Assembly (NCBI RefSeq): GCF_001194135.2
Contig: NC_069001.1
Location: 39,733,940 to 39,797,939 of the forward strand
DNA: 64,000 nt
Direction: 5' to 3'
Origin: Octopus bimaculoides
Taxonomy: Eukaryota
Positions 2,871 to 53,812 of the stretch are shown piece after piece (position 1 is the stretch's first letter; the number at the start of each line of letters is the position of its first letter). The position numbers were made by a program, and so were the translations under genes. Under the pieces are notes generated by a model, which worked only from the letters and a program-made list of their open reading frames with translations, made no database searches and was not told where the DNA came from.

Positions 2871-42458
<39,588 letters not shown>

Positions 42459-42968
42459 GTAAGTAATAAAAAAAAAACTACATCCAGAATTTTTTATTAT
42501 TTTGTTATTAAAGAGTTGTCTTCTTTTTTAAATTTCAAAAGTGATAAATTATGTCCTGATAAAATATAAACAAGCCTTTTAGGACAGTTTTAATGAGTTC
42601 CTTGTTGTGAATCTAATGAGAGAACCGTTTCTAGTTTTATTTGCTTTATTTCAGAATTATATAAACTGTTGATTTTGAAAATTAAAATACATTTTTGTTC
42701 TGGATATTTGTGCTATATTCAACGTAGTATATTTCTTTTACACACATATGTACATGCAAACATGCATGTGTGTGTATTGTACATGTTCTGTTTTGAGTTT
42801 TTTCTTTTCAATTTCATATCTTGTTTTGTACATTTCTTTAAAAGCAAACTCTTAAGACTTTAGCTGTTCCCTTACCATTGTTCTTGTTAATTGTCCCCTT
42901 ATCTCATTAGTGGCCCTTTTACTTTGCTAGTTGACACACACCTGTCAAAGTGTTGTACTTTTTTGCAG

Positions 42969-42983
42969 GAGAAAAAAGAAGAG
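42969..42983 (+). CDS. Cav2: Candidate 15-nt microexon after the IQ motif (EKKEE)
   Basis: tactttttttgcag|GAGAAAAAAGAAGAG|gtcagt; phase 0-0. Confidence 0.6.
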
Positions 42984-43724
42984 GTCAGTACTTCTTAGCA
43001 TGAAAGTGTGCAAAACTTTACTTTCACTGATATTGCACATCTTCAAATGTTCTTGTCTTCAAAGTGTTCCGATACAGAGCATACCAGTTCTAAAGCTAAG
43101 GAATAGACCTAGCACTGCCTAGATTGACAACAGACATCAACTCAACCAGATGCTATTTCAGTTAAATTAGCCAATTAAAAATGCATAAAGAAAAACTGTT
43201 AAATTTCTAAATAGTTCTACTATGAAGTGTTTAAAAGTGTCATCATACATTTGTAATCTGATCACTGATGCAGTTTTACTGTATTAAGGTTTCAACTATG
43301 AGTGACACCTTTCGCTTCATATAAAACACTTACCTTATTTACAAATTATAGTAAAAATATGTGAAGATAATTAGAACAAAATAGAAATTCTACCTAGGGA
43401 CATGTTTTGTAGGAAAGCCAAATTATTAGGTCTGTATTTAATGTCATGAGCCTTGATATTGCAATTGATTAAAATTACATCCATGGTGAGGAAAATGACT
43501 AATTAACCTAATGAATGACTCTTGCTAATAAATGCAGGGGAGACAACCGTGATATACTAAATTTTTAAAATTAATATACAAATGATCTAATAATGATAAA
43601 AATGATAATTATAAATCAATTATTAAAATAAAACAATTTCATTCTGCAATCAAGATGCATCTCATCTCATCACACTAGGAATATTTGTCCTCCACTAGCA
43701 TTGCTGGAACCTCAGTTTTGTGAT

Positions 43725-43890
43725 GTGTGTCTCTGCCAACAAATAATATCTGGTGTATTGTGGTGTCCAGTACAATATTAGTGGTCAGCAAAGCTGATTC
43801 TAAGTTGAGCAACAATTTTAGAGCTAGGTGGAATGTGTCCATAAATCTCCATTTTGGTCATGGGCTCAAGCCACGAGAAGTCTTGTGTAC
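43725..43890 (-). mobile_element. RTE-like LINE fragment
   Basis: Minus strand reads MEIYGHIPPSSKIVAQLRISFADH*, resembling the RTE C-terminal LYG...RLRFAGH region. Confidence 0.55.
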
Positions 43891-44477
43891 GATTTTATCA
43901 CTTGTCTTACCAAGATTTTATCCTAAATCTCAGATTATAATTCTGCTTACCACTATGTTAGTAAGTTAGCTTGTGTGTTGGGTAGTTTTTTGCAACTTAA
44001 TGTTTTGAGTTCAAATCCTGCCGAGGCCAGTGTTGCTTTCCATCTTTCTGGAGTTGATAAAATAAAGTACCAGTTGAGCAATGAGGTTGATGTAAATTAT
44101 CGAACCCTCTCTACTGAAATTTGAGCAAAAATACTGGCCTTTGGGTGGTTTTCTGCTAGTTTATTTAGTTGGTAAATTAATGATAATCAGTGATCAATAA
44201 TTGATTTGGTTATAATCTGTGGGTATTATCAATAATATACATCAACCAGAATATTTAATCTTATAATCTGAAGAAGTTCAGGGTGTTGGATGTGAGTATG
44301 AAGACACTGAGTCTTGAATACGTTAATTGGTTTGTCATAAATGATTTTATTGCTATGATAATGTCATTAATTAATTATAATAAAGATTATGATGATGATA
44401 TCGACAATAATTCTTTAACTAAATATCACACCAATTCAGTATTGAAGCTGTTTCCTTGCCTAGAGGTTAATGAGGGA

Positions 44478-44522
<45 letters not shown>

Positions 44523-52628: not shown

Positions 52629-52910
52629 CATATCTATAGGTGTATATATATATTATTATATATATATAAATATGTATATCCATATATATGTATAAGACCA
52701 ATCTTTAGATTATAAAGTTATATGTATATTTATATAAGTACCTTGTACATTTTTTTGTTTATGTGTATATGTGAATATATATATTATATATACATGCACA
52801 CACAGTCCATGGCCTTTGGAGAGTAATCTACAGCTGTGATGTCGAAGAGCTTTTCGTTTCTTGTTGAAATTTTGAATGTATCTGATTTGTTCAACTTTTC
52901 TGATTTCAAG

Positions 52911-53054
52911 TTGTTCTGGGAGGATGATATTAAGGAGTATCGTGATGACGATGATTATAAAGAATATCACGATGACGAAGAGTATCACGAGGATTATAAA
53001 GATTATCAGGAGTATCAAGAGGATTATAAAGATTATGATGAGGACTATAATCAG
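52911..53054 (+). CDS. Candidate 144-nt cassette exon encoding a D/E/Y-rich repeat (LFWEDDIKEYRDDDDYKEYHDDEEYHEDYKDYQEYQEDYKDYDEDYNQ)
   Basis: About 60 nt free of AG, then ttttctgatttcaag|; 48 open codons; CAG|gtatga donor; phase 0-0. Confidence 0.55.
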
Positions 53055-53812
53055 GTATGACTGAATACACTCCAATTACTCTGGCACACCTAAACTGCAT
53101 CTGGAATTTAAGTTACACCAGTCTGCCTCCATCCTCTTCAACTCTATTATTATCCGAATTTATGCTGTCACAAGTTATCCATATTTATGCACCTACCTCA
53201 TTTTAAATTGCTTGTGACCCAAGTAGTTGAAAACACTTTTTCTTCAACCAATTTTTGTCACCAGTGTAAGTGCATTGAAAACGTAGTCCATTTTATCATA
53301 AACCAGTCGAAAAATCTTTGTAGTCCTTGTCCTTTATTTCTCATTCATTGTAGGTTTGTTTTTGTTTGTTTTTTTTTGTTTTTTTCATCCATTTTGCAAG
53401 TATTGCAGTGATTTGTGCTAGTTTCCAAAATATAGTTTTTGTCCCTTTTGCTGTAGCTCTTACAATCAATGAGGAATTTTATCTTATTTTTTCTTCTTTT
53501 ATTCTGCATGTTGTGGTGGAATTATTTTTCTATAGTTTTTATCATTTACTTATCTCTTCTAGCTAGACCAAATCAAGAAATATGTTCTAACCATATTGTT
53601 TTCGTAAAGTTTAGTTAAAGCTATCAACTTGTTAACATTTCAAATCTGGTTCTAAAAAGAAACTGATAATTAAAAACCCAACATGTTTTCATTAAACTTG
53701 TAATCTATTTTCTCTGTGTTTACAACCCTTTCTTATGTTGTGCACGGATCAACTATGCATGTTGCTTCATCATCATGGTAAGAAAAATCAACTCGTCATT
53801 CAAGTAAGCGAG

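Follow-up and report, generated by a model that had tools for sequence, protein, structure and literature searches.

The window analyzed here, a 64,000-nt stretch of Octopus bimaculoides contig NC_069001.1, contains exon reading frames of a four-domain calcium channel (IVS4, IVS5, IV pore/S6, EF-hand, pre-IQ, and IQ), which lie upstream of a cassette exon rich in acidic residues and tyrosine (the acidic exon; Table 1). The recognizable CaV2 exons together span positions 35636 to 42458. When the joined exons were compared with PDB by phmmer, human Cav2.1 was the best match (4.6e-92), accompanied by human Cav2.3 and Cav2.2 (to 3.3e-89), all ahead of Cav1 chains; this similarity to PDB Cav chains stops at the IQ region, and Pfam finds a Ca_chan_IQ match in the IQ exon. 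With flanking exons most similar to Cav2.1, Cav2.3, and Cav2.2 and with mRNA that joins it to the IQ exon, the acidic exon is part of a CaV2 alpha1 gene, in the proximal C-terminal tail directly after the IQ (calmodulin) site, as an earlier note made from the sequence alone had proposed. Runs of N mark assembly gaps at positions 3661-3812, 7800-8073, 12603-12955, and 25708-26309.

Table 1. Features of the octopus CaV2 locus (positions in the window) and divergence from a related octopus lineage (contigs L001-L004 and L005)
Feature	Position	Strand	Description and basis
IVS4 exon	about 35.6 kb		Recognizable CaV2 exon
IVS5 exon	about 36.5 kb		Recognizable CaV2 exon
IV pore/S6 exon	about 38.2 kb		Recognizable CaV2 exon
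C-terminus start exon	about 40.2 kb		Recognizable CaV2 exon
EF-hand exons	about 40.9 and 41.3 kb		Recognizable CaV2 exons
Pre-IQ exon	about 41.7 kb		Recognizable CaV2 exon
IQ-domain exon	42349..42458	+	Upstream partner in inclusion and skipping isoforms; RNA contigs, phmmer, Pfam
15-nt microexon GAGAAAAAAGAAGAG (EKKEE)	42969..42983	+	Context cag/.../gtcagt; RNA contigs; 15/15 conserved in L005
Conserved island around acidic exon	52761..53354	+	0.7-1.3% substitutions versus related octopus lineage
Acceptor region	52850..52910	+	T-rich, 59 nt without AG, ending ...tttcaag, then TTG; sequence; identical in related lineage
Acidic tyrosine-rich cassette exon	52911..53054	+	144 nt, phase 0-0, 48 aa; translation, RNA contig ends
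Acidic exon (144 nt) versus L001-L004	52937 (substituted site)		1 substitution, G>A (GAG>GAA), synonymous; 0 indels
Flanks versus L001-L004	up to about 150 nt from acidic exon		0.7% substitutions
Youngest in-frame tandem duplication	52980..53039	+	30-nt unit EYHEDYKDYQ / EYQEDYKDYD; TRF period 30, 1.9 copies, 96% match
Donor site gtatga	53055..53060	+	CAG/gtatga; sequence, RNA contigs
Intronic arm	53313..53330	+	Candidate 18-bp RNA helix partner of exon positions 52987-53004; perfect, 3 G.U pairs
Stretch beyond the island versus L001-L004	53355-54137		5.0% substitutions, 7 indels

Translated on the plus strand, the acidic exon is free of stop codons and reads LFWEDDIKEYRDDDDYKEYHDDEEYHEDYKDYQEYQEDYKDYDEDYNQ (LFWEDD...DYNQ). 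Its 48 residues include 23 acidic ones (14 D and 9 E), 10 tyrosines, 4 lysines, 1 arginine, and 2 histidines, and successive tyrosines lie 6, 3, 6, 4, 3, 3, 4, 3, and 4 residues apart; both the tally of 23 D/E and 10 Tyr and the interval of 3 to 6 residues reported in the earlier note are exact. The synonymous variation that it described (GAT/GAC, GAA/GAG, CAA/CAG) is equally real, with 11 GAT and 3 GAC codons, 7 GAG and 2 GAA, and 2 CAG and 1 CAA, and every tyrosine (10/10) is encoded by TAT. The borders that it drew, an AG-free acceptor region (nearest upstream AG at position 52848) and a CAG/gtatga donor, are both used in mRNA. Among 7,498 stop-free segments of 48 codons in the six frames of the whole 64-kb window, just 18 have at least 15 D/E together with at least 6 Y, and all of these overlap the acidic exon. 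TRF resolves the exon into in-frame tandem units, one of 30 nt (Table 1) and one of 27 nt in 2.3 copies, the latter being the older. Its composition (34% GC versus 31% in the window; 64% purine) is local base composition read as GAT, GAA, TAT, and AAA codons. The other two plus-strand frames and one minus-strand frame are also open across it, including a 121-aa Ile/Leu-rich open reading frame at 52710-53075 on the minus strand and plus frame 2 at 52876-53064; these extra frames are open because the codon repertoire of the repeat is restricted, and they are no evidence of more genes. Microsatellites surround the exon.

The peptide also contains a single match to the pattern DYKxxD, the core motif recognized by anti-FLAG M2 (PMC11756784), at residues 38 to 43 (DYKDYD), as had been pointed out before. 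The match to the FLAG epitope is one of pattern; the octopus motif is coincidental and sits in a native protein. It could cross-react with anti-FLAG M2 in octopus tissue, or serve as a free reagent.

Evidence for splicing came from Logan RNA contigs matched to short stretches of the locus, which show only dominant paths. The acidic exon is spliced at its exact borders in more than 10 public RNA runs from several studies; in X35, X16, X33, and X25, for example, contigs cover 52909/11-53054 and then pass on each side into exon sequence that lies elsewhere in the genome. The inclusion chain runs from the IQ exon to a 15-nt microexon (EKKEE), to the acidic exon, and on to exons beyond the window. 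Upstream of the acidic exon, contigs read ...AATAGTTTAAAAATG followed by GAGAAAAAAGAAGAG, that is, the end of the IQ exon and then the microexon, and in X16, X33, X25, X42, and X26 they read ...AAAATG, GAGAAAAAAGAAGAG, and TTGTTCTGG... in succession and in frame; the chain recurs in X26, X42, X41, and X40. Two runs labeled as a second organism (X37 and X38) splice the acidic exon identically (at 80% likeness). Matches in X13 and X14, also at 80% likeness, are spurious and reflect only GAT-rich sequence. Downstream of the acidic exon, contigs continue into CCCTCTGAGAAGCAGGACTTTTCATGGGGA (PSEKQDFSWG), outside the window; the constitutive exon joined to the acidic exon is PSEKQDFSWGLRPEH. In X39 the acidic exon is followed by AGCATTGAAATGAAGG... 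(SIEMKDVGRR) instead. The junctions at 52911 and 53054 for which the earlier note had looked to spliced reads are thus present, and its 0-0 phase agrees with in-frame splicing of all 144 nt in the mRNA contigs. The link to the IQ exon that it expected stands, as mRNA carries both exons in one chain, but it overlooked the EKKEE microexon between them, found just ahead of the acidic exon in all inclusion contigs that reach across this junction.

Skipping was seen as well. Contigs of X52 and X48 pass straight from the IQ exon into CGTCCACCGTCATTCTTCCAG... (RPPSFFQRII), and X50 goes from the IQ exon through a different microexon, CTGCAATATTCAGACTCTGAGGAG (LQYSDSEE), to RP...; the block carried by these skipping isoforms (RPPSFFQRIIG...SARSSQS...FLRRGSSRRKK; here the RPPSFF block) is conserved in molluscs. 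Since inclusion and skipping isoforms are both present and the exon length is a multiple of 3, the acidic exon is a true cassette, as had been claimed. Contig depth, a rough measure only, puts its inclusion at 26 to 100%, with acidic exon to IQ exon depths of 108/208 in X35, 27/104 in X40, and 11.5/38 in X39. At branch points of the assembly graph, contigs break precisely at junctions: the IQ contig of X40 stops at the final base of the microexon, exon contigs of X35 and X40 begin 30 nt (k-1) upstream of 52911, and one contig of X26 breaks exactly at the 3′ end of the acidic exon. In every acidic-exon contig seen, the RPPSFF block is skipped. Because Logan contigs show only dominant paths, however, this may not amount to exclusivity between the acidic exon and this block.

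The RPPSFF, SIEMKD, LQYSDSEE, and PSEKQ exons were not found within the window by tBLASTn with Aplysia, Mya, and octopus tails; those encoding LQYSDSEE, RPPSFFQRIIG..., and SIEMKDVGRR lie beyond its end (>64000) and are known as loose ends of contigs. Low-depth contigs of X16 and X42 run through the cassette donor (53055-53232) and through both sides of the microexon (42804-43060). They are unspliced pre-mRNA, and some branches in the junction graph could therefore be pre-mRNA rather than alternative splicing. Contigs of X35 and X39 halt 7 nt into the microexon (window position 42976, microexon nt 8), and those of X35, X40, X42, and X38 halt 26 to 27 nt into the downstream PSEKQ exon. Such common stops in independent runs suggest sequence variants, for example through A-to-I editing of an AAA Lys codon or through errors in runs of A.

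The acidic exon is not new to annotation. Searched without a profile against 1.84 billion representative proteins, its 48 residues matched two, the open reading frame of the window itself and UniRef100_A0A0L8G525 (1857 aa), the latter with two cluster mates. All three of these UniProt octopus models carry the exon, which has therefore been public since the 2015 annotation. Their tails read ...NNSLKM, LFWEDD...DYNQ, RPPSFFQRIIGVMRTPSARSSQSIDSEHSD...SFSFLRRGSSRRKK...KYK, SIEMKDVGRR...NKDE, and PSEKQDFSWGLRPEH..., an order in which the acidic exon follows the IQ exon and runs straight into the conserved RP(P)S(L/F)F block; this annotated junction was not found among the RNA contigs seen. Dunn et al. 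(2018) list the octopus exon in their Table 1 as "Large insert (LFWED...NQRP)" and place it where Aplysia has DPVRLPK/NHNEK, ahead of the "large C-terminal splice" (PMC5818475). The earlier note, which knew of no such segment in other Cav2 channels, was mistaken on this point, given the three models and the 2018 table. What the 2015 gene models miss is the EKKEE microexon, absent from all three, and the real combinations of exons.

The tract nevertheless appears specific to the octopus lineage, as the earlier note had supposed: only octopus proteins match among the 1.84 billion representatives, and the bivalve and gastropod sequences compared have no counterpart of the acidic tyrosine tract. 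A word-indexed protein search (of a database apparently holding only proteins up to about 520 aa) found just the window open reading frame and a genomic IQ-exon open reading frame, and a second protein search found tails from bivalves and arthropods only. In Mya, Aplysia, and Crassostrea the IQ exon leads through a small insert to RP(P)S(L/F)F, and these inserts (PHDNEE in Mya, DPVRLPK/NHNEK in Aplysia, and VEDKEE in Crassostrea) are not homologous to the octopus exon. The Aplysia large splice (RPSLFRRLMGMRTSSARSSQSLDSEHSDEND...LRRNSSKRRE) and the Mya arenaria tail (RPPSFFKRLMGVVRAPSARSSQSIDSDHSGDED...FLRRNSSKKRR) are clearly homologous to the octopus RPPSFF block; tBLASTn of the Aplysia and Mya tails against the window matched the IQ exon only. 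With the RPPSFF block common to molluscs and the acidic tract found only in octopus, the exon adds a lineage-specific segment at a splicing hotspot that is conserved among molluscs.

We compared the exon with four Logan contigs (L001 to L004, from SRR11869385, 390, 391, and 394) that carry the exact exon open reading frame but are not identical to the window. The neutral baseline was taken from one other stretch of the same gene, contig L005 (from SRR11869385, the run of L003), which covers the IQ exon and microexon (window positions 41894-44522); its introns are 12 to 17% different, for a baseline of 15.7% with 32 indel events in 2,048 nt, compared with 3/110 changes in the IQ exon, 0/15 in the microexon, and 3 to 4% in the 100-nt flanks of the microexon. 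At this baseline the acidic exon would be expected to have accumulated about 22.6 substitutions and 2.25 indels, against the single synonymous substitution and absence of indels observed (Poisson 4e-9 for substitutions; P = 0.11 for zero indels). There are no nonsynonymous changes, versus about 17 expected at the intron rate, all 10 tyrosines are kept, and both splice sites are identical in L001 to L004. Frameshifting variation in repeat length, which the earlier note had named as evidence against its reading, is not seen between the window and these contigs. Of the sampled 31-mers of 52800-53200, 100% are present in 12 DNA runs, which represent at least 9 samples. By the comparison with L001 to L004, the acidic exon shows strong conservation in another octopus lineage. 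Divergence along the locus is uneven (0.7 to 1.3% over about 600 nt at the exon, 5% over the next 0.8 kb, and 12 to 17% in introns near the IQ exon), which points to an extended conserved noncoding zone around the cassette. Conservation in the flanking intron equals that in the exon, so demands at the RNA level may explain part of the constraint.

The peptide encoded by the acidic exon has a net charge of -18.0 and a pI of 4.05, compared with a net charge of +6.0 and a pI of 9.98 for the RPPSFF block; the IQ exon is at +2.8. Aromatic and hydrophobic residues recur at a spacing of 3 to 4 in its C-terminal half, and when the segment is drawn as an ideal helix its last six tyrosines cluster to a single side (post hoc test; R = 0.73, p about 0.01). 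A single-sequence AF2 model, made without an alignment, predicts three helices with pLDDT averaging 65, a low confidence that indicates helical propensity rather than a confident fold and that weakens any argument from the helix. Tyrosine sulfation was considered for this segment and rejected, as the channel tail is cytoplasmic.

Isoforms with the acidic exon and without the RPPSFF block suggest a charge switch beside the IQ site: as an acidic segment (-18) replaces a basic one (+6), splicing would act as such a switch near the basic IQ/pre-IQ-calmodulin module. The exon would supply a polyanionic segment with helical propensity and an aromatic stripe, which in the contigs seen takes the place of the presumably ancestral, basic, Ser-rich post-IQ block. 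The exchange would alter intramolecular or partner electrostatics; its likeliest effect would be on gating that depends on calmodulin/Ca2+ or on the binding of partners, and the acidic-context tyrosines may be kinase targets. A switch that tunes calmodulin/Ca2+-dependent regulation is, in our judgment, the best explanation overall, and we hold it with modest confidence; tyrosine phosphorylation and Ca2+ binding are possible additions or alternatives to it. Against it, the acidic exon is followed directly by the RPPSFF block in the octopus gene models, and the X26 contig that ends at the 3′ border of the exon may leave room for such a junction.

A functional precedent for charge-altering splicing at this site may be found in Cav1.3 and Cav1.4, whose C-terminal modulator is spliced out just past the IQ domain, competes with calmodulin, and shifts gating. 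By analogy, splicing directly downstream of the IQ site would in both cases change a charged intramolecular module. The Cav1 modulator, however, is distal and acts via PCRD/DCRD helices, and it belongs to the Cav1 subfamily and has no sequence relation to the octopus exon, for which we propose functional analogy and no homology.

The closest system by position is CaV2 of Aplysia californica, in which alternative exons 45 to 48 follow the IQ domain and encode DPVRLPK, NHNEK, and the "large C-terminal splice" (PMC5818475, PMC10657410). The family and the position are the same, with ...(F/L)KM of the IQ exon before the site and RP(P)S(L/F)F after it, and both animals use successive cassette exons that include microexons. 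The sequences are dissimilar: Aplysia inserts are 5 to 7 aa long or form a Ser/Gly-rich basic block, whereas the octopus exon is 48 aa long, polyanionic, and tyrosine-periodic, and it replaces the RPPSFF block in the contigs seen, while the Aplysia inserts precede that block. In Aplysia, whether or not a channel carried the post-IQ alternative exons made no detectable difference to its expression, its modulation, or synaptic depression (PMC5818475, PMC10657410), and the 2023 Sci Rep follow-up, which describes four consecutive alternative exons after the IQ domain, likewise found no effect on synaptic depression (PMC10657410). This argues against a charge switch in octopus, though the sequences concerned are unrelated.

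The same Aplysia result, together with the conservation of flanking intron to the degree of the exon, favors a serious rival in which the exon encodes a largely neutral spacer, derived by exonization of AT- and purine-rich repeat, and the conservation reflects RNA constraint through splicing control or an A-to-I editing duplex. The base composition and tandem-repeat structure of the exon fit this origin, and codons such as GAT, GAA, TAT, and AAA act as splicing enhancers. A candidate duplex is present: an 18-bp helix between exon and downstream intron, a length matched by 2 of 300 flanks after dinucleotide shuffling, has both arms inside the conserved island; of the arm changes in the related lineage, one preserves the pairing (G-C to G.U) and one disrupts a near-terminal pair. 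From its sequence this helix may serve splicing or A-to-I editing, and the contig breaks noted above are compatible with editing sites; the fold of the whole region is no more stable than that of shuffles (z = -0.69). The intronic conservation also counts against a charge switch as the source of the constraint at the protein level. On the other side, a slippage-prone repeat without a single nonsynonymous change or indel, a frame kept open, and substantial inclusion are all poorly accounted for by a near-neutral spacer, and we consider RNA-driven constraint on such a spacer fairly unlikely as the full explanation.

The phosphotyrosine model of the earlier note, with a multisite tyrosine-kinase substrate and phosphotyrosine docking platform in the channel tail, seems to us quite unlikely. 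Acidic-context tyrosine clusters are phosphorylated by kinases in the N terminus of erythrocyte band 3 and in Syk/Src substrates, and the octopus tract resembles these in presenting D/E-flanked tyrosines in what is probably a disordered cytoplasmic segment: D or E occupies position -1 of all 10 tyrosines, positions -2 to -4 are mostly acidic, and every tyrosine persists in the related lineage. It differs from them in the regular spacing of its tyrosines (3 to 4), in K/H/Q at +1, and in the lack of SH2-type motifs. The +1 residue is K, H, R, or Q at 8 of the 10 tyrosines and otherwise D or N, unlike the known optima of Src or Syk. No canonical SH2 motif (pYxxPhi with an aliphatic +3, or pYxN) occurs at any of the 10, because +3 is always D, E, H, or Y and N is never at +2. 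The phosphotyrosine model gains some plausibility from the regulation of molluscan CaV2 by Src, which acts by way of a tyrosine in the EF-hand close by (PMC5818475, PMC10657410).

More doubtful still is a low-affinity tract for binding or buffering Ca2+ or other cations by the inner mouth of the channel, in the manner of the calsequestrin tail or the BK "calcium bowl." Its 23 carboxylates in 48 residues, the DDDD run, the net charge, and the proximity of the IQ/calmodulin Ca2+ sensor would suit such a role, but many polyacidic tracts have no role in Ca2+ binding, and the regular tyrosines and lysines would be left without a function. Pfam found only the IQ domain and no EF-hand or other Ca2+-binding family in the acidic tract, which also had no PDB sequence match at E ≤ 10. 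Finally, the possibility that the exon is only a chance reading frame in repeats, which the other open frames and the microsatellite surroundings might have favored, is ruled out for practical purposes by splicing in more than 10 runs, by the protein models, and by conservation.

Firmly established is a real, in-frame, alternatively included, and conserved exon of octopus CaV2 at the post-IQ splicing hotspot. CaV2 channels set off transmitter release, and short-term plasticity is shaped by the calmodulin machinery housed in their proximal C terminus. A bolder proposal, speculative and in our view improbable as a whole, is that octopods evolved a lineage-specific, strongly constrained acidic tyrosine-helix cassette, mutually exclusive with the ancestral basic block. 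Presynaptic CaV2 would then come in two classes of opposite charge that differ in calmodulin/Ca2+ or tyrosine-kinase control, with the choice between them perhaps made by the conserved exon-intron RNA duplex or by editing. A swap of a conserved acidic segment for the basic one beside the IQ site would offer octopus neurons a simple route to diversify presynaptic Ca2+ entry.
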